Shown here: one piece after another, positions 7,623-64,000 of the stretch | Layout: every line of letters starts with the position of its first letter | Position numbering within the stretch: position 1 is the stretch's first letter | Origin: Epiperipatus broadwayi | Lineage: Eukaryota; Animalia; Onychophora | Direction: 5' to 3' | Length of the DNA stretch: 64,000 bases | Assembly: GCA_028023455.1 (NCBI GenBank) | Contig: JAQFVV010000002.1 | Location: 26,598,001-26,662,000 of the forward strand | Translations under genes and position numbers: made by a program | Notes under the pieces: generated by a model | What the model saw: the letters and a program-made list of their open reading frames with translations, nothing else | Told to the model about the DNA's origin: nothing | Database searches by the model: none

Positions 7623-7666
7623 ACCAATATACATATTTCATGCTAAACCAGCACTCATCAGTTGGT
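7623..7666 (-). ncRNA. Minimal type I hammerhead ribozyme (family A), core intact
   Basis: ACCAA CTGATGA GTGCT-GGTTT-AGCAT GAAA TATGTA T A TTGGT: 5-bp helix I, 5-bp helix II, full CUGAUGA/GAAA/UH core. Confidence 0.9.
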
Positions 7667-8036: not shown

Positions 8037-8080
8037 ACCAACTGATGAGTGCTGGTTTAGCATGAAATACATATATTGGT
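8037..8080 (+). ncRNA. Minimal type I hammerhead ribozyme (family A), core intact
   Basis: ACCAA CTGATGA GTGCT-GGTTT-AGCAT GAAA TACATA T A TTGGT. Predicted cleavage after 8075. Confidence 0.9.
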
Positions 8081-20699: not shown

Positions 20700-21330
20700 A
20701 TGGGACCCGAACTCGAACTTTCATGAAAGCTCCTTATATCTGTACAATCTATCTTATATAACTGATACACATGACCACATATATGTGAAAAAAATAAATG
20801 ATCCCCAATATATGGTATTTCATGCTTAACCGCACTCATCAGTTGACCCAGATCACAATCTCACACACGTATATGTAATCAGTGCTCAGTTTGTACTAAG
20901 ATAGCAAATCTTTAAATTTTAATGGACAAACTTCAATCTCCTCCACTGTCCAACTTTTCAGTTATCCATTTCATTGAAAATTCAAGGATGGAATGCTCAA
21001 CGCCCTTATTGATGGATTTTCAATGAAATGGCTGGCTGAAGACTTGGAGAGTGGAGAAGATTGAAGCTTGACCATTAAAATTTAAAGATTTGCTATCTTA
21101 ATATAAATTGAACACTGATGGCGATCTGGATCAACTGATGAATGCTGATTCAGCTCAAAATACATATATTGAGATCATTTATTTTGTTTACATGCATGTG
21201 GTCATATGTATCAGTATAAGATAGATTGGATAGATATAGGGAGCTTGAAAGTTCGAGTTCAGGTCCCTTATAACTACATTAAGTTTAGTATAGATAATTT
21301 ACATATATTTAAGTATTATATGTATATAAA
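20700..21330. mobile_element. HHR repeat family A, inverted duplication
   Basis: 20700-21010 and 21010-21330 are reverse-complementary family A arms. The right-arm hammerhead (21130-21173) is G12A. Confidence 0.9.
20804..20847 (-). ncRNA. Hammerhead ribozyme (family A), core intact, helix I weakened
   Basis: GGTCAA CTGATGA GTGC-GGTTAA-GCAT GAAA TACCATA TA TTGGG. Confidence 0.7.
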
Positions 21331-29937: not shown

Positions 29938-30449
29938 TGATAGATAGTCTTTATGAGTATGTGCCGAAGTTAAAACTATTACTTATTTATAGAACAGATT
30001 AGTACTTTTAAATAATTGAGAAATGAGTGTATGATAAGAGTAGCAACAAAGAAATTGTATATATTACTTATAACACTTTTTCCATATATACTTTAATGCA
30101 ACAATTTTTCTTAAAAACTTCTTTATTTTCCTTACAGTTTCGACTGTCCAGCAGTCTTCATCAGAGCTCTATCTTTTTCTCTGCTGTAAGGAAAATAAAG
30201 AAGTTTTTAAGAAAAATTGTTGCATTAAAGTGTATATGGAAAAAGTGTTATAAGTAATATATATGATTATATGAAGATATGCAAAGAAAGTGCAAGAGAA
30301 GAACAAAGAAATTGATGAAATTTGTAACAAAACTGAAATGCAAAGTTAATAAATTACTAAAAATGAAAAAAAAAAGTATTAGTTGGGAAAATAATTCTAA
30401 TTCATTAATTTTTTTGACCTTATATATATAGTATATGCATATATACATT

Positions 30450-30950: not shown

Positions 30951-31241
30951 TGATCATATGATTGATTAAGGTAGTATATTTAGTATCTATGGGAGTACAA
31001 AATCTCTTTATCAGTTAGTATTTATCATATTTCAATCATTTTTTTTACAAACAACATATTCACTCTCATTTGACATTAGATGATTATCTTCTAATTGATA
31101 ATAATTAAATATTCATTTAATAACTAATAATGTATAGCTATCCAAATTGACTATTTGTTGCCTAATAGTGGAGTGCTATTTTTAGTATGACTTATTAATT
31201 AGTACCAATCAATTCTTTATTCTGATTTATGGTAGCTGATA

Positions 31242-31877
31242 ATCATCATCATCATCATCATGAACCATTATCAATCCACTGCAGGACGAAGGTCTCTCCA
31301 AGTTTAATCCATCTTCTCCGATCTTTAGCTTCTCTTCTCCACAACACCCTGTACATTTTCTTATTTCATCCATCCATCTCACATGTGGTCTCTTTCTGGG
31401 GCTTTTACAATCTCTTGGAATCCAGTTTAAAATTTCAATTGTCCATCTATTATCATCTCTTCTAGCAATATGTCCAGCCCAACTCCATTTCAATCTTTTA
31501 ATTTTTTCAATAAGGTCAGTACCTGTTTGTTGTCTTACCCATACATTGCGTTTTCGATCTCTTCTTGTTACTCCCAACATACATCTCTCCATACTCCTTA
31601 GAGTGGTCTGAAGTCTCTGTATTGCTCTTCTATTTAGTGTCCAAGTCTCAGATCCATAAGTAAGAACTGGTAAAACACATTTGTTAAAAACCATCCTTTT
31701 CAAACACATAGGCATATTTCCTTTTAGTATCAAGTTATTTCTACCAAAAGCACTCCAACCAAGTTTAATTCTATGATTAATTTCCTCCATTATGTTTCCA
31801 TCTGTATTAATAATCTGACCAAGGTATTTGTAACTGTTACCTTCTTCTAATTCTTCATAATCAATCTTTATTTTCAT
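31242..31877 (-). mobile_element. 5'-truncated RTE-clade LINE (RT thumb/C-terminus) with (TGA)n tail
   Basis: Open frame with YKYLGQ, VLTYGSETWTL, KWSWAGHIARR and RPHVRWMDEIRK. The 3' end is a (TGA)n microsatellite, seen as (CAT)n on the + strand. Confidence 0.92.
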
Positions 31878-31979
31878 ATAATAGTGGATATTAACGATTG
31901 AAGGTGTTTTTAAATATTTTCAGATTTTATTACTTGCAATGTGAAAAATTTTATAATTTTTTTAATATTATATGAAATA

Positions 31980-34298: not shown

Positions 34299-34477
34299 AA
34301 TTAATTTAAATGATTTGGGTTTTTTTTTAATTCATCGTAGGAAAAATTATTTCCAAGTTTTACATGTTGTAAGATCAAACTTTATAATAATGGTCATTTA
34401 TGTACACAACATTTTTTTCTTTCGATTTTACAGTTTAATGTTTTTATCTAACTATATTATGTAATTTCTATTTTTAG

Positions 34478-34780
34478 TGTAGAGTTATATTTGCCGGACG
34501 AAGACACCTGGACAGAAGTTAGTCCTCTTCCATCACGGAGGTTAGAATGTGGTTTATCAACTCTTGATGGAAAACTTTATATTATTGGAGGTATGATATG
34601 CACTACAAAAAATGGCTCATTATTTAGATACTTTACCAATAGTGTTGAAAGGTGGGCGATGGACAAAAATACATGGACTAGTATAGCCAGCATGACTAGG
34701 TGTCGAAGTGCTCTTGGAGTTGCTTCTGTCAATCAGTATTTATATGCCATTGGTGGTTATACCGAAAACACATACCACAG
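34478..34780 (+). CDS. Kelch-repeat (KLHL-like) protein, internal exon
   Basis: Acceptor TTTTTAG, donor AG|GTTAGT, phase 2 at both ends. Encodes SVELYLPDEDTW...LYIIGG...SVERW...TW..IASM...R.ALGV....LYAIGG (kelch GG/Y/W signature). Confidence 0.93.
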
Positions 34781-35357
34781 GTTAGTTGTGGAAATTTTCT
34801 ATAAAAAAAAAACTATCTTTTTTTTTTTTTTGGTTGATAATACACTTTTTTTTTTTATTATTATAAGCAAACATTTTCCTTATCGGGATTTATATTGTTA
34901 TTGATTAATTTAAACTCCTTTACTATCCTAGCTTATAAGTAGTTAGTTAATCATTGTCACTTTGAGCACTGTCAGGTCCTTATACCTCAGAATTATTATA
35001 ACTTGGAACTTGTCTATATTCTACTATTAGGTAATCCTATCTGCACTTGGATAAATATGCATAAATTGCTTAAATGACATATCAATCAACATAGAATAAT
35101 AATAAGTGGTACTTACATCTTCACATGAGATTTACATCATCATTATTTCATTATCTACTTCCTTGCATCATTTCCCCCTAAACCCTTGACTGCATTCTAC
35201 GATTCATCACACAACATTTTCATTATGTATTCAAGATTAAATCAGTGATAAGATTGTCTTCTGGTTGTTGCCTACCTTATTATTTACTATTTGCTACTAA
35301 AATATAGTCACAAGGCTGAATTATTAACAGCAATTAATTTAATACCTTTGGGAGCAA

Positions 35358-35667
35358 ATTAATCTCCATATATGTGCTGTTTTAATAAATTGACATGCAC
35401 TCATCCATAAGAAAAGATTTAAAAGAACAAATGAATTACTTGTTCTTCAAGGTTTTCTATATATAAACCAATCTTTTACCATGCATATTTAGAGCTTGAG
35501 TCTAAAAAATTAGGCAATAGATAGACTCAGGCCTGAATATATATGGTAAGTAAAAGGTTGGCTTATATATATAGATAAGCTTGAAGAACAAGTAATTCAC
35601 TTGTTTTTTCAAATCTTTGCTTACGACCACGTCAGTTTATTAAAACAGGGCGTGTGTGGAGATTAAT
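35358..35667. mobile_element. Foldback MITE in the kelch intron
   Basis: Arms of ~130 bp are reverse complements: ATTAATCTCC..TGAATTACTTGTTCTTCAAG versus CTTGAAGAACAAGTAATTCA..GGAGATTAAT. Confidence 0.8.
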
Positions 35668-36278
35668 ACAATAAATAACTGTGCTGTATAAAAATATTTA
35701 TTAATTAATTTACTAAATCTTAATTTCAAGTCAATTCACATGTAAATAATATGCAAATAATTGATGGTACATTCTTTATTCATTATTGCACTGTTTTATA
35801 TCAACTTTTGCCAGAGGCTTATATCTCTTACCTATTTTAAATATAATATAACAGGCTTATTAATTTGTGGCAGAGATTTATATCTCTGATATTTCTAAAT
35901 ATCATCAACTTATTAGTTTCTGACAGAATCTTAGACCTACTGTATTTTTAAATATATCGTATTCAACTTTTTAATAGTTATCTGTACCAAAATTTTCCTA
36001 TCAACTTTATACTCCTATTTTAGAAAGAATTATTGTGTGATATTAAGTTCAATTAATATTGCATTGACAGTATGGTTGCAAAACAAATCACTGATATTTA
36101 TTCTTCTGGTTCTGATATATTTTATATAACCCCGCATGGAATGCTGAATGGATGGTCAAAACATAATTTCAAATAAATGAGTTTCATATGCAGTCAACTT
36201 ATTGTGATACAAAATAAAATAAAGTATATGCAAAAAGTATGTATCACGATAATAATAAAATTTCTAAGGATGAATATT

Positions 36279-36852
36279 AAGCCAATAAACATCACATGAC
36301 CACCACTTCTTATGCTTGTGTACAACTGTTGTTAAAACAGGCAAAACTCACTATACGTATTGCCACACACAGCAAGCTAGAATAATCAATGGATGCCAGA
36401 ACAACAGTTGTACACAAGCATAAGAAGTGGTAGTCATGTGATGTTTATTGGCTTAAAACCAATCCTGCCTAATAGGATAGTGGTGGCTGTGGTTATTAAA
36501 GAACCAAAGACACCAAAATGTACGGGTACTGAACTGGATTCAGACCCATATGGCTATATAAGCTATGGGCTTGGATTGAAAACATTAAGGTGTTTTCAAT
36601 TTAAGACTCATGGTTTTGTAGTTAAGCGGAGATAAAAGGTGGCTGCTGGAGGGTTGCATTAGATCCTAAGATCTAGGTGCAGTACTCTCAGATCCAAGGC
36701 TCCTCATTGACGGAGGGCACAAGCCAGAAACTAGTCTGGGGATATTGGATGAGTAGGCACTAGATGGGGATTTTATACACAAGCCTTCTGGCATCCATTG
36801 ATTACTCTAGCTTGCTGTGTGTGGCAATATGTATAATGAGTTTTGCCTGTTT
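36279..36852 (+). mobile_element. HHR repeat family B: short inverted arm plus full monomer, 14-bp TSD
   Basis: TAAGGATGAATATT at 36265-36278 and 36853-36866. Inverted arm at 36279-36411. The hammerhead at 36701-36742 has a mutated core (TTGACGG). Confidence 0.9.
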
Positions 36853-37635
36853 TAAGGATGAATATTCTATTCAATCGTTAACATAGATCATACAACTTCA
36901 AACTTTTCTCTTCAGTAGGTAGGGTAATAAGGAAATCTTTCACAGCATACTAAATTTTTATGGCACAAAACATTTTACTTTTAAAAACTCTTATTGCACA
37001 TTTCTATTCTTAAATAATTGTAATTCTTCCCCAGTCTTAAGTTCTAACTCATGTCAGCATTAGTTACTAATCATTATTATTCTTTAATTTTAAATAATAT
37101 TATTTTTTGGCATATACTTCTTAATTCATATGGATGCTAGGGTTATTTATCAAAGGATAATGCTGCTGTAGGATTTCTTATAAAAATATGCCTGTATTTA
37201 AATCCATGTAACACTTTGGTTAGAAATAAAAGACGTTACTTCAGTTTATGAGTAAATCCAGGATAAAAATGACAATGTGGGTCACTAGAGTATATACTTT
37301 AGCTTAAAGGCTGTCAGTAGTAATTGATCATCATCTAACAATACCATTGCTAACATATTTCTCTAATCACTACTTGGAAATATTCCTATTCACTTTTTTT
37401 TTATACCATAATGGATCCACAAAAATATTTAAATTGACATATATGTAAATAAGTTAGCCATTAAAAATATGTGTAATTATTTAAATTATAAGAAAATTGC
37501 AAATCAGAAATGTATAATTTATACAGAAGTTTAATACTTTTGATTATTGGGGGGGGGGGGGTGTCATTATTAATTAATGTAATGCAGATGAGAAACAAGT
37601 CATATGATATTGCTGTAATTGTGTATTACAATATG

Positions 37636-38035
37636 ACACCAATCCTGCCTAATAGGATAGTGGTGGCTATGGTTGTTAAAGAGCCAAAGACACCAAAATG
37701 TATGGGTGCTGAACTGAGTTCAGACCCATATGCCTATATAAGCTATTGAGCTTAGATTGAAAATATTTTTGTGTTTTCAATTTGATTCTCATAGTTTTGT
37801 AGTAAAGTAGAGTTAAAAGGTGGCTGCTGGAGGGTTGCATTAGATCCTAAGATCTAGATGCAGTGCTCTTAGATCCAAGGCTCCTCACTGATGAAGGCCA
37901 CAAGCCAGAAACTAGTCTGGGGATATTGGATGAGTAGGCACTAGATGGGGATTTTATGCCCAAGCCTTCTGGCATTCATTGATTACTCTGGTTAGCACAG
38001 GGTGGCAATACTGTATGGAGAGTTTTGCTTTGTTT
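37636..38035 (+). mobile_element. HHR repeat family B, 5'-truncated monomer
   Basis: Colinear with 36458-36852 and 62856-63250. Confidence 0.9.
37882..37923 (+). ncRNA. Minimal type I hammerhead ribozyme (family B), core intact, sense to the kelch pre-mRNA
   Basis: TCCTCA CTGATGA A-GGC-CACAA-GCC-A GAAA CTAG T C TGGGGA: 6-bp helix I, palindromic CUAG loop III, predicted cleavage after 37917. Confidence 0.85.
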
Positions 38036-39021
38036 ACATTATTTATTATAGAATCTTTAAACTGACTTACAAGAATTGTCTTTTTAATTTTTCTCTTTCT
38101 ATGATTTTGTCTTCATATAATTGTCTAATCTTACTTGAAGTTAAATTTAAAGGTATGAGATTTTTTGTGATCAAACAAACCTGAAGTATTAATAGAATGA
38201 TAATTTATACACATATTAATGTTAATTTCCAAATTATGAACAAACAATAAAATAATAATTATTTCGGATGTGAAAATTTCTTTTTTTCCTTATTTTTTAT
38301 ATAGTTATCACTATTTATTTTATGTTTATTGTTTTCCTTAATGTTTTTAGTTTCTAGCAATGTAATTGTTTTTGCTCTAACATAATTAAAACTGAAGTTA
38401 TTGTGAAAATTGTATCTCAGGCCAGTATTTTAAAAAATTCAATATGGTGGTTTAGTCCCAATCAGTTAAAGAGTAAATTGTATACATTAATGAAAAACAA
38501 ATGGATATCCATGCTATTTTTAAATAAAAACCAATTATAGTTCTTCCTAATACAAGTAAATTAATTAAGAATTTTATAAATACTATATCTAAAAAACAAA
38601 AAGGTAAAATTATTTATCAAATTATATGTGAATACAAAAAAATTACATAAATCAGGTTAAAATGTCCTTTAGAAAAAAGATTAAATGCACCAACTATTTT
38701 ATAACCATTGCAATACAGTTTCAGTTTTTTTTTACATCATTAAAAATCTAATTTTAAATAGAACTTTAATTCAGATTATCCATCAATATTGCATGAAGAT
38801 AGTTACCATAGAAAGAGGAAAATAAGTAGACAATGTACACATATCAAAACACACAATTATTGGAAAATTATGTTGCATCTATTTCTCATCCATTTAAGTT
38901 CAGTTGATAATGATTACAACACAAGTAATCAAAAGTACTTCTGTATAAATTTTATGATATTATTAGTTATTTGTACAATTATTATAATTTAAAATAATTA
39001 TTTATGTATAGCCCGTTTTTC

Positions 39022-39256
39022 TAAAACAGGCAAAACTCACTATACATATTGCCACACACAGCAAGCTAGAGTAATCAGTGGATGCCAGAAGGCTTGTGCA
39101 TAAAATCCCCATCTAGTGCATACTCATGCAATATCCCCAGACTAGTTTCTGGCTTGTGGCCTTCATCAGCGAGGAGCCTTGGATCTGAGAGCATAGTGAG
39201 TTTTGCCTGTTTTAATAACAGTTATAAGCAAGCATAAGAAATGATGATCATGTGAT
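39022..39256. mobile_element. HHR repeat family B, two short head-to-head arms
   Basis: Reverse arm 39022-39190 and forward arm 39191-39256. Flanks ATAGCCCGTTTTTCT and ATATCCTGTTTCTTT look like a decayed TSD. Confidence 0.85.
39134..39175 (-). ncRNA. Hammerhead ribozyme (family B), core intact
   Basis: TCCTCG CTGATGA AGGCCACAAGCCA GAAA CTAG TC TGGGGA. Confidence 0.8.
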
Positions 39257-39753
39257 ATATCCTGTTTCTTTGCTAATCAAGTGTAGCGGAGAATTAGATT
39301 GTTTATAAAATAGTCTCAATCTTTATATGGCAGATATACATACGTATTACAATTATATTGTTACATATTCATTATAAATTCATTTTTCTCAGCATCAACC
39401 TTTTGGTATTAGCTCTGAAATCGAAAATTCCAGTTTGATACTAGATGGATTTTTCATCATTATTAATAATTGTTGCCATTTTTAAATGTTAATTCTGTGC
39501 TATTCATTGACAGAGAACTTTCTATCGATTATTAAGTTGTTTTCTAAATACATTTAGCATTAAAAAATGGTCAGTACTAAACTAATTTGAGTTACAAAAA
39601 TGTACTGGTAAATAGCACTAAGGTAAAAATAATTAATGATATAAATTGTAGAATTATTATTTACTTTTTAGAGTGAATTCAATCGCAAATCATCCCTCTC
39701 CTTATACATTTATATATTGATGATTTTTTTTGCTATGTTATCTTATATTTTAG

Positions 39754-39894
39754 GTCTGTTGAAAGATATAATTCTAATTTAAATATATGGGAAAGTGTTT
39801 GCTCAATGAATGAGACAAGATGTTGTTTTGGCACTGCAGTAGTTGGGGGTATGATCTACGCTGCTGGTGGTTATGGACCCCCTTGTCTGAACAG
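39754..39894 (+). CDS. Kelch-repeat protein, next internal exon
   Basis: Acceptor TATTTTAG, donor AG|GTAACT. In phase with the previous exon; encodes (R)SVERYNSNLNIWESVCSMNETRCCFGTAVVGGMIYAAGGYGPPCLN. Confidence 0.93.
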
Positions 39895-42633: not shown

Positions 42634-42795
42634 TTACACCACTAAACATCACATGATCACTATCTCATACTAGCACAATAATTGTTATTGGATGAGTAGG
42701 CACTAGATAGGGATTTTATACACAAGCCTTCTGGCATCCATTGATCGCTCTTATTAGCACAAGATGGCACTACTATATGGAGAGTTTTGCTGTAT
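42634..42795. mobile_element. HHR repeat family B fragment (inverted plus forward piece, no ribozyme)
   Basis: A reverse CATCACATGATCAC arm joined to a forward ATTGGATGAGTAGG...GAGAGTTTTGC segment. Confidence 0.8.
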
Positions 42796-42898
42796 TTTGA
42801 AATGTTTAATACATTAATGCTTGTTATTAATCATTTATTAAACTAGAGATTATCTCTAATCAAATATAAACTTTAAAGCTCAGTTAAAGATTAATATG

Positions 42899-46534: not shown

Positions 46535-49459
46535 CAATGGTGAGCAAATGTGGCCCTCAGAGCTTAGGTGAGTTAAGTGCGGCTCCTATTGAAATCTGAT
46601 TTTACTTTTATTATTTCAGTTTTTTTTTTTAATTGCACAAAAACTTGTAATATGATAGAAATTTTTATCAAACATTTTTATTACTTATTTTATTATAAAT
46701 TACATCATATATGTATGTATATGCTATTTTGAAATATATTGGCAAACTGTATGTTAAGGATATTCTTCGAATCTTATAAAAATTACATATGCATGCGGTG
46801 TGATCATGTACATACTTACGATTTGCGCAATTTTGCGATTCTATATTTCAGTGATAGTTTTCCTATCAGCTAAATGTCCTATTTCATTTTTTTTTTATTT
46901 TTAAAAATCCGGTTAAGTAGACTGTTTTATTAAGCAATTTAAACTTGTTTAGGATGTGTAATTTTTCCAGAGCAAGTGTTCTAAAGTCATGGTACAGGCT
47001 AAGAAAATTATTTTAATTGTTTATAATTAGTGCACTTAGAAATTCATGTTTTTTAAAATCACTTATATAAAAAACTCTTGAAAATAAAACTGGAAAACAT
47101 TTCCTTGATTTTGGTTATTTTGTTTCTGTTTTTGGTGGTAAATAAGAAAAAAACTGATGTTTAAGAATTATCAGGCAAATATCAAATAAAAATAAATATA
47201 GTCCAAAATTGCTATTATTCTAAATTGTTTTTATTCTTATTTTATTTTAAGAAGCCATGTTCCTTTGACAATTTATTGTACCATGTACGAATCTTTTAAA
47301 ACAAAAATTAATATCTAGACATTTTAATTAACTATTTATTTGTGTATTTTGTTTGAATTTTAGGCTTTAGAAATAAATTTACTTAAATTTTATGTTATCA
47401 TGACCTCAGAAAATAAAAAACGAAAATACCAACAAGAAAATAGAAGCTTTCAGAAAGAATGGATAAGAAAATTTGATTTTATTGTCAATAATGGAAAGTC
47501 ATTTTGTCTTATTTGTTAAGTTGCAATTGCAAACTACAAAGTAAGCAATTTAAGTTGACATTATGAAATAAGTCATTCCCATTTTTTAACTCTATATCCA
47601 CAAAATTCAAAATTGCAAAAAGAGGAAACCTAAGTGATTGGAATCAGGTCTTCATATGCAAAAAGGATTTTAGTCATGAAGATGAACCAGTGAAGCTAGT
47701 TTTTTTGGTAACTAGGAATATTACTCATGCCAAATGTCCTTATAGAGGAGAATTTATGAAAATAAATTTGGAATAAGTGATTAAAGTTTTGGATCCAGAT
47801 AATACAAAACTGTATATATTAATCACACAAGATCTTATGTCACACCATACAACTGAGCATCGTATTAGTGAAATTAAAATGTTAAAGATAGTTCGATGTG
47901 TGATTTAAAAAATTATACAGCATTCAGTTTAGCTCTTGATGAGTCCACAGACATTCAGGATATTCCACAATTGGCCATTTTTGTTCACTATTTATCAGCA
48001 GATGAAAATGTGAAGAAAGAAATGTTAGACCTAATAGCTTTTACTGAAACAACTCACAGTATCGATGTCAAAAATGTGCTTGATGAAGTAATGAACAGGC
48101 TTGAATCGCCTTGTGATGACCTTGTCAGTATTGTGACTCATGGTGCCCCTGCAATGATAGGGAGAAATCTAAGTCTTATTGTGCTTTTAAACAGTGATCC
48201 TAAAATTCCATATTTTGTATCTCTTCACTGCATAATTTGTGAGTATCTGGTAATGAAGTACTTAAAATATGAAAATGTGTGGAAGATTGTTTTGAGATTG
48301 TGAATTTAATTAGAACAAATGCCAAAACACACCATCATTTTAAGAACTTTTTAGAAGAATTAAATGACAAAACAGATGAATTGCCCAGTGATCTTTCCTT
48401 ACAGTCTGTTATAAGATGGCTGGCAACCTACAATGTTTTGAGCCATTTTGTGGAACTCCTAAAGTCTATCAAACATTTTTAAAAGGAAAAGGGAAAAAAT
48501 ACTCAGAATTAGAAAAAGAAACTTGGCTTGCTGACTTTATGTTTTTTACAGACATTATGGAATATGCAAACACTTAATTTGGCTTTACAAGGAAAGAGGA
48601 AAATGATTAGTCATTTGTCATAAACTGTTTTTAATTTTGAACTTAAACATTGGCTTTTTGTGCTTAATCTTATGTCCAGAATATTAAATCATTTTCCATG
48701 AATAAAGGCAAATATAATCAATACCAAAGAAGAAAAATTAGACAAATATAAAGTTGGATGGATTGCAAGTGGATTTCAAATGTAGGTTTGAAGATTTGCA
48801 AAGTTTTAAATCTATATTTGCATATTTTGTGAATCCATTTATTTGAGATATTATTGAAGATGGATTTCCAACTTCTGAAATATTTGTCGAAACAGTGGCT
48901 GGGGAATTGGAGTTTTTAGAGATGAAAGAGGATCAGTCATTGTAAATGCGTCACAAATCTAGTTCTTTAATTGAATTTTGGAAACTCGTGCCAGAATCAA
49001 AGTATCCGCACTTAAAGAAAACTACTTGCCATGTAATTTTGATTTTTGGTACAACATATTGCTGTGAATTATTATACTCCATGATGAAATTTGTGAAGTC
49101 AAAATAACTTCACACTTGACCAATCAGCATCTTACAGAATTGCTGTGAATAGCTTTAACAAATTATATGCCACATTTCAAAGATTTGACCGAAGATCTTC
49201 ATTAAATGTTATACTTTTTATTAATGAATTTTTATTATATATTTATTTTTAAATAATTATTTTGTATTTTATTTCTTCTTTTATATACTTTACACAATAC
49301 TTAAAACTTGTGTAGAATATGTCATCATATTAATTAAGTTAAATAAAATTTGACTATATGTATTTATTTTTGTGTACTTAAATAATGTGATGCGGTTCTT
49401 TACAATACATGAAAAACTGGCATGCAGCTATCATTGACTACATGGGTGCTCACCCCCTG
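46535..49459 (+). mobile_element. Full-length decayed hAT transposon (Charlie/SPIN-type), 2925 bp
   Basis: TIRs CAATGGTGAGCA and TGCTCACCCCCTG. Degenerate 8-bp TSD ATATAGAC / GTATAGAT with a central TA. Confidence 0.8.
47400..49204 (+). pseudogene. hAT transposase (GTF2IRD2/ZBED8-like clade), multiple stops and frameshifts
   Basis: KRK..ENR.FQ.EW zinc-finger start, FSLALDESTDIQDIPQLAIFV, THGAPAMIG, SLHCII, RWL and WL.DF.F.TDI motifs. Confidence 0.93.
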
Positions 49460-59638: not shown

Positions 59639-59742
59639 TTTTTTTTCCATGTGTCATAGCATCAGCCGGGAAGCGAACCCGCTAAACTGGGACAACTGCT
59701 TGTAAAGCAGCTGTCCTGACCTCTCGACCACCAATGCTTGGA
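59639..59742 (-). mobile_element. tRNA-derived SINE, family 1
   Basis: Reverse complement of the consensus GCATTGGTGGTCGAGAGGTCAG..GCGGGTTCGCTTCCCGGCTGATGCTATGACACATGG(A)n. Confidence 0.85.
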
Positions 59743-62260: not shown

Positions 62261-62443
62261 GTAATGCTGAATGATAATGAATATAGACTATCACATGATC
62301 ACATTTCCTATACTAACACATTAATTGTTGATAAACAGAGCAAAACTCTCCATACAGTATTGCCACCTGTGCTAAACAGAGTAATCAATGGATGCCAGAA
62401 GGCTTGTGCATAAAATCCGTATCTAATGCCTACTCATCCAATA

Positions 62444-62485
62444 TCCCCAGACTAGTTTCTGGCTTGTGGCCTTCATCAGTGAGGA
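62444..62485 (-). ncRNA. Hammerhead ribozyme (family B), core intact
   Basis: TCCTCA CTGATGA AGGCCACAAGCCA GAAA CTAG TC TGGGGA. Confidence 0.85.
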
Positions 62486-62647
62486 GCTTTGGATCTGAGA
62501 GCACTGCATCTAGATCTTTGGATCTAATGCAACCCTCTAGCAACCACCTTTTATCTCTACTTAACTACAAAACTATGAGAATGAAATTGAAAACACACAA
62601 TATTTTCAATCTAAGCTCAATAGCTTATATAGTCATATGGGTCTGAA

Positions 62648-62687
62648 CTCACTGACGAAGGCCACAAGCCAGAAAATAGTCTGGGGA
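62648..62687 (+). ncRNA. Hammerhead ribozyme (family B), core intact, loop III no longer palindromic
   Basis: CTCA CTGACGA AGGCCACAAGCCA GAAA ATAG TC TGGGGA. It lies exactly at the inversion junction. Confidence 0.75.
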
Positions 62688-64000
62688 TATTGGATGAGTA
62701 GGCATTAGATAGGGATTTTATGCACAAGCCTTCTGGCATCCATTGATTACTCTGTTTAGCACAGGTGGCAATACTGTATGGAGAATTTTGCTCTGTTTAT
62801 CAACAATTAATGTGCTAGTATAGGAAATGTGATCACGTGATGGTTAATGGTTTAACACCAATCCTGCCTAATAGGATAGTGGTAGCTGTGGTTGTAAAAG
62901 AGCCAAAGACACCAAAATGTATGGGTGCTGAACTGAGTTCAGACCCTTATGACTATATAAGCTATTGATCTTAGATTGAAAATATTTTTTATGTTTTCAA
63001 ATTTCATTCTCATAGTTTTGTAGATAAGTAGAGATAAAAGGTGGTTGCTAGAGGGTTGCATTAGATCCTAAGATCTAGATGCAGTGCTCTCAGATCCAAA
63101 GCTCCTCACTGACAAAGGCCACAAGCCAGAAACTAGTCTGGGGATATTGGATGAGTAGACATTAGATAGGGATTTTATGCACAAGCCTTCTGGCATCCAT
63201 TGATTACTCTGTTTAGCACAGGTGGCAATACTGTATGGAGAGTTTTGCTCTGAATATAGAGTACATAATAAAAATAGTAATATAATATAACTGAATGAAT
63301 GAATCTCTCAGTCCTTTTATATGCTGCTTCCTGATTGTTTTCTTTTTATCATTCTCCAATCTGGTTTAATTAAATGTTATATTTCATTAATTAAAATTGT
63401 ATTCTTTTTAATCTAACTTCTTGCTTAGATTAATCTAAGATTTGATAAGATAATGTCCATAGTCTTTTCCTTTGTTTCTTCAATTAGTGCAATAGGAGTT
63501 ATTATTTCTTTTCTTTATCAGCCAAGTAATATTTTAAGCAAATTTAAATTTAAAAGTTTTCTTATTTCATTTTTAAATTTTTTTTTCTATTTAAATTTAT
63601 AAAAAGGGAGAGCCAACTTTAATTTTTTTTACTTCCTCCATTTCTACTCGCTCTTTAATGCTAAAACTATTTTTTACTTTTTTTCTTAAATGACAAGATG
63701 ACACAACACTTTATTTTTACAATTTGCTTCTCAAAAAAAACTTTTTCAAACATATGATAATTTATATTTCACCTTTATCAAGACTTAATTATTTCTTTTA
63801 AAATTAATTTGATCATTTATTAATAAATGATTTCACATGTAAGGCAGAATATATGCGTGTTCTCAAACCATATATTCATTGACGGTACAATATATATATA
63901 TCTCCATACATATGCAAACTAATATAAATTAATGTTATCTATAAAAATAATTAAAAGAAAATAATTCAGTCATAAAAAATAGTGAAATAATAAATTGAAA

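Follow-up and report, generated by a model that had tools for sequence, protein, structure and literature searches.

The kelch gene intron at 34781-39753 of the window, a stretch of 64,000 nucleotides from Epiperipatus broadwayi, very probably holds three independent and selectively inert insertions of a high-copy retrozyme, with the kelch gene being spliced normally. The element would be a 456-nt non-coding retroelement, equipped with a type I hammerhead of the dimer type and inserted with the footprint of the Penelope-like element (PLE) machinery. At the family level the hammerhead would serve the element itself. In transcripts of multimeric arrays neighbouring motifs are expected to pair via the palindromic ACUAGU to a double hammerhead, from which RNA of unit length would be released. 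The case is an ordinary one, and its value is descriptive, as a clean example of Penelope-type retrozyme insertions within a gene. The results presented here concern anatomy and copy number, the footprint of insertion, the energetics of folding and the constraint on the hammerhead core at the family level.

The initial annotation had described a 4973-bp kelch-gene intron with three insertions of the repeat called family B. Sequence comparison confirmed 34781-39753 as an intron which separates two kelch-blade exons of a kelch-repeat (KLHL-like) gene:

34478-34780, plus strand: kelch exon A, 303 nt, two blades, phase 2 at both boundaries, acceptor AG at 34476-34477
34781-39753, plus strand: GT-AG intron, phase 2, 4,973 bp, 29% GC
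39754-39894, plus strand: kelch exon B, 141 nt, one blade, followed by a GTAACT donor

The donor of the intron reads CAG/GTTAGT with the G at 34781, and the acceptor consists of a pyrimidine tract and TAG/G with the AG at 39752-39753. Searched separately, both exons exceeded the Pfam Kelch_1 cut-off of 20.1 bits (62.1 for exon A and 28.9 for exon B), and the best natural match in the PDB was the kelch domain of KLHL20 (E 1e-41 for exon A and 3e-37 for exon B). The join of exon A to exon B coincides exactly with a kelch repeat boundary (GGY...H-R/SVERY) in phase 2, and the GC content is 0.29 in the intron versus 0.39-0.40 in the exons. An HMM made from the three blades found no kelch-like open reading frame within 34781-39753 and retrieved no further blade among all open reading frames of the window, and no BTB- or BACK-like frame was seen among the GC-rich ones in the window. 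Within the window the kelch gene comprises three blades only, compared with six blades plus BTB and BACK domains in a KLHL protein, the remainder lying outside; a further kelch reading frame or exon on the same strand was found by protein search at C2:26689098-26689310, 27 kb beyond the window end. When a second haplotype or a paralogue of the exon A region was sought as a check for insertion polymorphism, the sole match was the locus itself.

Mapping onto the 456-nt unit placed repeat copies 1 to 3 at 36401/36434-36852 (plus), 37636-38036 (plus) and 39024-39193 (minus), so that the three insertions which had been claimed are indeed present, together with a fold-back repeat:

35345-35702: fold-back repeat, two inverted arms of ~155 nt
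36279-36852: insertion 1, head-to-head composite, from repeat mapping and an exact 14-bp target duplication
36279-36401, minus strand: insertion 1 minus arm, unit ~174 to 50
36401-36852, plus strand: insertion 1 plus arm, unit ~118 through 456 to 117
37565-38036, plus strand: insertion 2, single monomer of about one unit, 95% identity to the tandem-array unit
39024-39256: insertion 3, head-to-head composite, from repeat mapping and gapped alignment
39024-39193, minus strand: insertion 3 minus arm, unit 403 through 456 to 117
39193 to at least 39256, plus strand: insertion 3 plus arm, unit ~97 to ~160

The target duplication of insertion 1, TAAGGATGAATATT, is exact over its 14 bp and lies at 36265-36278 and 36853-36866. 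For insertion 2 the gapped alignment reaches about 37565 (unit ~113), an approximate 5' boundary; its candidate target duplication is a 12-bp AT-rich match with one mismatch that may be element sequence, and a second hammerhead alongside is absent. A search for a target duplication flanking insertion 3 yielded no clear one. With three insertions in this 5-kb intron and a genome mean of 0.04 hammerhead-bearing copies per 5 kb, the locus is unusually loaded.

Across the 5.6-Gb genome 38,024 exact copies of the 30-nt hammerhead motif, with a pyrimidine at position 7, were counted (reversed control 0), and full-length candidate matches number at least 1,766 at 94-96% identity. In the arrays L019, L021 and L029 the cleavage sites are 456 nt apart, as they are on contig C1, where as many as five units follow one another, and the unit has a GC content of 39.5%. 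All 29 adjacent arm pairs on opposite strands, from 30 sources, are head-to-head ('-+', with 0 '+-'), 28 of them having their outward 3' ends at unit ~118 and ~160-176, and 13-14-bp target duplications (14, 13 and 13 bp) flank three composites in the window. A DNA-transposon MITE, as suggested by terminal inverted repeats, was considered and rejected, because throughout these pairs the apparent terminal repeats are the overlapping ends (unit 118-174) of head-to-head arms. By its sequence, family B is an animal non-LTR retrozyme, non-coding, with a 456-nt unit found in tandem arrays and head-to-head double arms. Its footprint has the marks of a Penelope-like one, namely head-to-head or partial-tandem arms, fixed 3' and variable 5' ends and a duplication of more than 10 bp, and mobilisation by PLE enzymes is likely. 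PLE insertions are alike in their arms, their ends and their 13-14-bp duplications (PMC4209133; PMC11167929; bioRxiv 10.64898/2026.07.22.740005). In contrast to PLEs, family B has no RT/GIY-YIG reading frame and would thus be non-autonomous. Animal retrozymes are derived from PLEs, and in Xenopus 42-44% of the retrozyme copies are located in introns (bioRxiv 10.64898/2026.07.22.740005). The metazoan non-LTR retrozymes, especially HHR_Amex1 of the axolotl (Cervera & de la Pena 2020, PMC7229834), are likewise non-coding low-GC tandem repeats of 150-450 bp with a type I hammerhead in each unit and thousands to more than 100,000 copies, and HHR_Amex1 shares the one-bp helix III with a palindromic tetraloop, which would make this a dimer-working motif. 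Family B differs from them in a unit as long as 456 nt, which is at the top of that range, and in a helix II of three G-C pairs bracketed by A in place of a 4-bp stem with a core-adjacent G10.1-C11.1.

Three hammerhead motifs are contained in the insertions, and the earlier description of them was borne out, i.e., a mutated sense copy at 36701 with its palindromic loop kept, an intact sense copy at 37882 and an antisense one at 39134:

36701-36742, plus strand: sense hammerhead remnant, dead core (C3U, A9G, and C10.3G breaking helix II)
37882-37923, plus strand: sense hammerhead, intact core, exact motif match
37882-37887 and 37918-37923, plus strand: helix I of this hammerhead, 6 bp
37888-37894, plus strand: core CUGAUGA
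37896-37898 and 37904-37906, plus strand: helix II, GGC/GCC, flanked by A37895 and A37907
37908-37910, plus strand: GAA
37911, 37912-37915, 37916 and 37917, plus strand: A15.1, CUAG loop, U16.1 and C17
37917/37918, plus strand: predicted scissile bond
37873-37878 and 37926-37931, plus strand: closing stem, 6 bp
39134-39175, minus strand: hammerhead with intact core, antisense to the gene, exact motif at 39140-39169

The exact motif, CUGAUGA-A-GGC-CACAA-GCC-A-GAAA-CUAG-UC, is found at 37888-37917 (plus) and 39140-39169 (minus), where 0 matches are expected by chance from dinucleotide shuffles of the window. At both positions the invariant type I core (C3 U4 G5 A6 N7 G8 A9, G12 A13 A14, A15.1-U16.1, H17) is complete; at 36707-36736 it is broken by C3U and A9G. 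The copy at 36701-36742 retains its site strand, GAAACUAGUC/UGGGGA, and the CUAG loop, with a potential site after 36736. This variant has one exact match in the genome and nine within one mismatch; the idea that its mutations mark a hammerhead-dead subfamily was rejected, the variant being private to this copy. Helix II of the family B hammerhead consists of three G-C pairs, bordered on each side by a nucleotide that is unpaired or part of an A-A mismatch, and helix III is 1 bp with the palindromic CUAG loop. PLE hammerheads are known to have an extra nucleotide 5' of helix II, those of the pLTRs being alike in the additional nucleotide between A9 and helix II and in the palindromic helix III (PMC4209133). 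For an extra nucleotide 3' of helix II no description was found, and a search of the full text of the literature gave no occurrence of the motif sequence.

The motifs might be hammerhead look-alikes that are working ribozymes in no context, with the repeat spreading by other means than self-cleavage, which we regard as unlikely. The Rfam hammerhead models are silent on 6.5 kb and on 131 nt, both at the gathering threshold and at E<=10, helix II has only three pairs with an A at each end in place of the G10.1-C11.1 pair that usually lies next to A9 and G12, and the copies end at unit ~118 and ~174, away from the cleavage site; in addition, the hammerhead of a lizard PLE was not required for insertion in vitro, with no read ending at its site (PMC11167929). 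The silence of Rfam is, however, uninformative, since the other hammerhead family of the window (family A) is missed as well, which indicates little power for dimer-type motifs. All 13 of 13 invariant core positions are present, and the 6-bp helix I, the internal loop, the closing stem and the palindromic helix III fit the canonical metazoan type I design (PMC4209133). Genome counts for the variants at positions 7 and 8 are 22,261 for U7, 15,763 for C7 and 5,488 for G8A; decay of the only CpG of the aligned consensus to the tolerated N7 variant is about four times commoner than to the lethal G8A. This 4:1 asymmetry of U7 over A8 at the same CpG supports a constraint on the core across the family, suggesting that the hammerhead is real at that level. 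The predicted folding also argues against a look-alike: the minimum for two intact domains folded together is exactly the double hammerhead, with -36.0 kcal/mol as compared to 2 x -16.2 kcal/mol for the monomers.

The intact sense copy at 37882 runs in the direction of the kelch gene and has lost none of the invariant core nucleotides, which makes self-cleavage after C37917 conceivable in chemical terms. The initial annotation had proposed that the pre-mRNA could be cut there, possibly by dimer pairing with the 36701 motif, in competition with splicing and with a potential effect on host-gene regulation. The dimer part of this proposal failed. As the two cores of a double hammerhead each cleave the site of the other copy, copy 2 with its intact core would cut at 36736/36737, and the core around 37917 would be the dead one of copy 1; a dimer with the 36701 motif therefore cannot cut at 37917. 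Pairing of an intact with a dead hammerhead thus moves the cut to the site of the dead copy, and even this heterodimer, at -33.6 kcal/mol versus a cofold minimum of -37.3 kcal/mol, is not the favoured fold. Left without a competent partner, the sense motif at 37882-37923 would act only as a slow monomer. The minimum-energy two-dimensional fold of an isolated domain is a register-shifted misfold (-16.2 kcal/mol versus -9.6 kcal/mol for the hammerhead fold). In axolotl hammerheads with the same helix III design monomers cleave at 6-22% per hour and dimers are needed (PMC7229834), and poor monomer cleavage with a short helix III is likewise stated in PMC4209133. Such rates were calculated to give 0.05-0.8% cut molecules in 0.5-2 min. 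Some invertebrate retrozyme hammerheads are fast as monomers, a coral one having a kobs of ~0.8/min (PMC7229834), and a rate of this kind would lead to 33-80% cleavage within 0.5-2 min. By analogy with the published hammerheads that share its design, we infer slow kinetics for the sense monomer. From the site at 37917/37918 to exon B there are 1,837 nt; once the motif is made, transcription would continue for ~1.2 kb until its sequestration in a long duplex with the antisense copy becomes possible, and for 1.8 kb until the downstream exon appears, with an expected cleaved share of the kelch pre-mRNA of well under 1%. Observations that fit less well with inert insertions are the fast monomers of coral type, the helix I probability of ~0.45 in the context of copy 2, and the unusual load of the locus.

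Co-transcriptional cutting at 37917/37918 which severs the intron ahead of splicing and lowers kelch mRNA, as by the CPEB3 intronic ribozyme, appears very unlikely from these considerations. In its favour are the sense orientation and intact core, and the accessibility of the hammerhead helices in the local ensemble, where copy 2 taken by itself has pair probabilities of 0.45 (helix I), 0.88 (helix II) and above 0.9 (closing stem). Also, intronic ribozymes tuned to transcription time are a precedent for modulation of host mRNA (PMC10919898), and a mild depletion of Xenopus retrozymes from introns suggests some cost (bioRxiv 10.64898/2026.07.22.740005). Against it stand the slow monomers expected from a 1-bp helix III (PMC7229834, PMC4209133), the dead core of the sole sense partner, the short interval before exon B, the sequestration by the antisense copy at equilibrium, and the A/A beside helix II, unlike the conserved G10.1-C11.1 pair that stacks on the core. 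Furthermore, nothing marks this motif, one of about 38,000, as a regulator. The amniote intronic hammerheads HH9 and HH10, described by de la Pena with Garcia-Robles in 2010, are reportedly conserved intronic ribozymes with a proposed host function. They and the HDV-like ribozyme of CPEB3 (PMC10919898) resemble the present case in that a protein-coding gene has the motif on the sense strand of one of its introns, and in the concept of cleavage versus splicing, but they are single-copy and orthologously conserved, their helices are stable, and their measured kinetics suit the length of the intron. The motif at 37882, in contrast to CPEB3 and to HH9 and HH10, belongs to a recent repeat copy and has a weak helix III; far from being single-copy, it is one of 38,024 identical motifs and lies in a copy 95% identical to array units. 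Intronic ribozymes disturb splicing only when fast, according to Fong 2009 as far as cited in PMC10919898. We infer that a regulatory effect on the kelch gene is absent, the sense copy being unlikely to affect it. If it did cut the pre-mRNA fast enough, this would be a natural instance of host-gene control by a mobile ribozyme, and thousands of introns in this genome would be subject to it as well. As the hammerhead of the family is built to act as an intermolecular pair, cutting in trans is conceivable too. Retrozyme RNA from ~38,000 copies could dock on sense intronic site strands, using ACUAGU and the 3' strand of helix I, even at dead-core copies such as 36736, and thousands of host pre-mRNAs including that of the kelch gene would then be attenuated when retrozyme expression rises; we consider this exceedingly improbable. 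Whether such copies are tolerated would show genome-wide in the numbers of sense and antisense copies in introns and in how intact their cores are.

Another possible, though rather doubtful, main effect is intramolecular double-stranded RNA from the inverted copies, which would require no ribozyme chemistry, be a substrate for A-to-I editing or small RNAs, and may juxtapose distant sites. Inverted intronic repeats are classical editing substrates. Sources would be the pairing of copy 3 with copy 1 and with copy 2, the two head-to-head arms of insertion 1, and the fold-back at 35345-35702. The antisense copy 3 is complementary to copy 1 over 170 nt at 94% and to copy 2 over 147 nt at 90%, with duplex energies of -307 and -262 kcal/mol, respectively. 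In the minimum-energy fold of 3.1 kb, 37863-37940 is fully paired with 39117-39194 over 75 bp, so that the whole sense hammerhead is predicted to be sequestered at equilibrium, in line with the pairing which the initial annotation had envisaged. On the other hand, no effect on the product is known for editing within an intron that is subsequently spliced out, and back-splicing, which had also been raised, loses ground as all arms are inside one intron, a geometry that does not promote exon circularisation.

The fold-back itself had been called a MITE. Its fold-back nature holds, the fold of 35358-35667 having -149 kcal/mol and z = -19, whereas the arrangement looks more like a head-to-head pair of a ~155-nt repeat than a classical MITE. 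A possible 13-bp target duplication is present at 35332-35344 and 35703-35715, and at least 873 candidate relatives occur in the genome, many of them aligning to one arm only.

The intron at 34781-39753 belongs to a kelch gene in a 5.6 Gb assembly of 18,588 contigs, and the window around it has a GC content of 28%. Its flanking exons, A (34478-34780) and B (39754-39894), were searched one by one. Exon A contains two kelch blades and exon B one, with Pfam Kelch_1 scores of 62.1 and 28.9 bits at a cut-off of 20.1; their nearest natural structures are KLHL20, followed by KLHL2/3 and KEAP1. The intron ends in a donor CAG|GTTAGT and in an acceptor consisting of a long pyrimidine tract and TAG|G. 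Exon A and exon B are bounded in phase 2, in each case at the repeat position directly 5' of the SVE motif, and their junction would restore the normal ...GGY-x7-R|SVERY spacing. GC content is 39-40% in the exons and 29% in the intron. From these sequence features we infer that exon A is spliced to exon B across 34781-39753. A blade HMM run over the window found no kelch reading frame in the intron and no blade beyond the three known ones. A protein search of the genome located a further kelch reading frame on the same strand, 27 kb beyond the window end (C2:26689098-26689310, C2 being contig JAQFVV010000002.1). The introns of this gene must therefore be very long, and the 4,973-bp intron is short among them. 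In the same genome unbroken kelch-repeat reading frames of 593 and 617 amino acids are found at C6197:33230056 and C6264:2856921-2857709, in contrast to the long-introned gene of the window.

The initial annotation had described hammerhead copies in this intron, and this anatomy was accurate. Each of the three pieces of family B is a copy of a 456-nt unit, its length set by the distance between cleavage sites in tandem arrays. Counted from the scissile bond as zero, they comprise:

Insertion 1, plus arm: unit ~118 through 456 to 117
Insertion 2: unit about 113/174 through 456 to 118
Insertion 3, minus arm: unit 403 through 456 to 117

The 3' end is thus common to all three and the 5' ends are unlike, and insertions 1 and 3 carry an extra inverted arm upstream. 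Adjacent arms on opposite strands were head to head in 29 of 29 pairs (30 sources), and in 28 of these 29 the outward 3' ends lay at unit ~118 and ~160-176, so that an inverted overlap of ~56 nt terminates each insertion. Family B shows this regular offset of its 3' termini genome-wide (L002-L030). An exact 14-bp target duplication bounds insertion 1, and 13-bp target duplications with one mismatch were found at two further head-to-head composites of family B in the window:

62290-63252: 13-bp target duplication
42636-42809: 13-bp target duplication

In Penelope-like elements both target strands are cut and extended and reverse transcription is begun internally (PMC11167929). The insertion pattern of family B is the footprint described for these elements, the terminal repeats of which are the source of animal retrozymes according to a 2026 preprint (bioRxiv 10.64898/2026.07.22.740005). 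The family B element is an animal retrozyme, a known type, and its insertions have a Penelope-type footprint.

Its hammerhead motif reads CUGAUGA-A-GGC-CACAA-GCC-A-GAAA-CUAG-UC, with a helix I of 6 bp, one G-U among them, formed by UCCUCA 5' and UGGGGA 3' of the motif, outside which an internal loop and then a 6-bp closing stem follow. This agrees with the canonical metazoan type I design, which has a helix I of 6 bp, a helix II of about 4, a helix III of 1-2 bp and a small palindromic loop (PMC4209133), except that helix II consists of three G-C pairs with an A on either side. Rfam scored neither this motif nor the other hammerhead family of the window. Two results argue that the motif would be functional at the family level. 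When two intact domains were cofolded, the minimum, at -36.0 kcal/mol versus -32.4 for two separate monomers, was precisely the double hammerhead, its helix III being 6 bp of ACUAGU/ACUAGU. The other result is an asymmetry of genome counts, which in an otherwise exact 30-mer were 22,261 for U7, 15,763 for C7 and 5,488 for A8. C7-G8 is the sole CpG of the aligned consensus, and symmetric CpG decay predicts TG and CA products in equal number. The tolerated N7 change outnumbers the lethal G8A 4:1, which points to copies propagated from masters with a working core.

The initial annotation had proposed that kelch pre-mRNA could cleave itself at 37917 in copy 2 (37882-37923, plus strand), with a potential regulatory effect on the host gene. 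Copy 2 is a lone monomer. In its predicted local ensemble helix I (0.45) and helix II (0.88) are fairly well populated; the isolated domain favours a register-shifted fold at -16.2 kcal/mol versus -9.6 for the hammerhead fold, and this hides C3-G5 and the CUAG loop. Monomeric hammerheads in which helix III has 1 bp and the tetraloop is palindromic are cleaved to 6-22% per hour and dimers are needed (PMC7229834); at these published rates 0.05-0.8% would be cut within 0.5-2 min. The transcription clock is short, as the antisense arm begins after 1,200 nt and exon B after 1,837 nt, and splicing is harmed by fast intronic ribozymes only, as far as the work summarised in PMC10919898 goes. Once copy 3 (39134-39175, minus strand) is made, 37863-37940 is wholly paired with 39117-39194 in the equilibrium fold. 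Given the slow monomer design, the short clock and this pairing, regulation of the host gene by self-cleavage is unlikely. The annotation's alternative of an antisense copy held up as regards the pairing, which by the folding model would be the better supported consequence.

The dimer of copy 2 with copy 1 (36701-36742), suggested as the species cutting at 37917, was wrong in detail. By chain connectivity each core of a double hammerhead is completed by U16.1-C17 and the helix I 3' strand of the partner, and therefore copy 2, with its core intact, would cut copy 1 at 36736|36737, while 37917|37918 would face the dead core of copy 1. The latter carries C3U, A9G and one broken helix II pair, changes private to this copy. 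The heterodimer fold has -33.6 kcal/mol, a figure leaving out the cost of closing the 1.1-kb loop, versus -37.3 for the cofold minimum and -34.6 for two monomers summed.

The intron is locally crowded, as about 0.04 hammerhead-bearing copies are expected per 5 kb; the 64-kb window has six such family B arms, where the genome mean predicts about 0.5. Intact motifs number ~38,000 genome-wide, and in Xenopus over 40% of retrozyme copies lie in introns (bioRxiv 10.64898/2026.07.22.740005), from which thousands of intact sense motifs in introns may be extrapolated. Assuming that the kelch gene reaches as far as the +51 kb exon, four sense motifs lie in its pre-mRNA, of which that at 37882 alone is intact, and the others in sense or antisense are as follows:

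36701, plus strand: dead core
62652, plus strand: mutated helix III palindrome, GAAAAUAGUC
63109, plus strand: G8A variant
39134, minus strand: antisense, intact
62450, minus strand: antisense, intact

The intact share of 1/4 in sense versus 2/2 in antisense is suggestive, the numbers being far too small to judge.

The supposed foldback MITE at 35345-35702 consists of two inverted repeat arms of ~155 nt. It has at least 873 candidate matches in the genome, many to one arm only and some in tandem at ~330-nt spacing, and a candidate 13-bp target duplication (35332-35344 / 35703-35715). The element is perhaps a further head-to-head insertion of Penelope type and not a DNA-transposon MITE. Family A hammerhead motifs, with CUGAUGA, helix II GUGCU/AGCAU and GAAAUAC, lie in a long palindromic arrangement, and Rfam gave no hammerhead match for them:

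7626-7661, minus strand: family A motif
8042-8077, plus strand: family A motif
20807-20842, minus strand: family A motif

A third hammerhead-like motif (30113-30164, minus strand) has CUGAUGA, one additional A, a 5-bp helix II (GACUG/CAGUC) with the canonical G10.1-C11.1, and GAAAC; about 1 kb away is a reverse-transcriptase-like reading frame of 230 amino acids (31230-31919, minus strand). The sole gathering-level Rfam match in the window, a tRNA-like sequence at 59658-59737 on the minus strand (37.4 bits), bears a 10-nt insertion in its variable region and could be the head of a tRNA-derived SINE or else a degenerate tRNA gene. At 47364-48574 on the plus strand a same-strand series of reading frames of 51-141 amino acids resembles pieces of a transposase-type protein.
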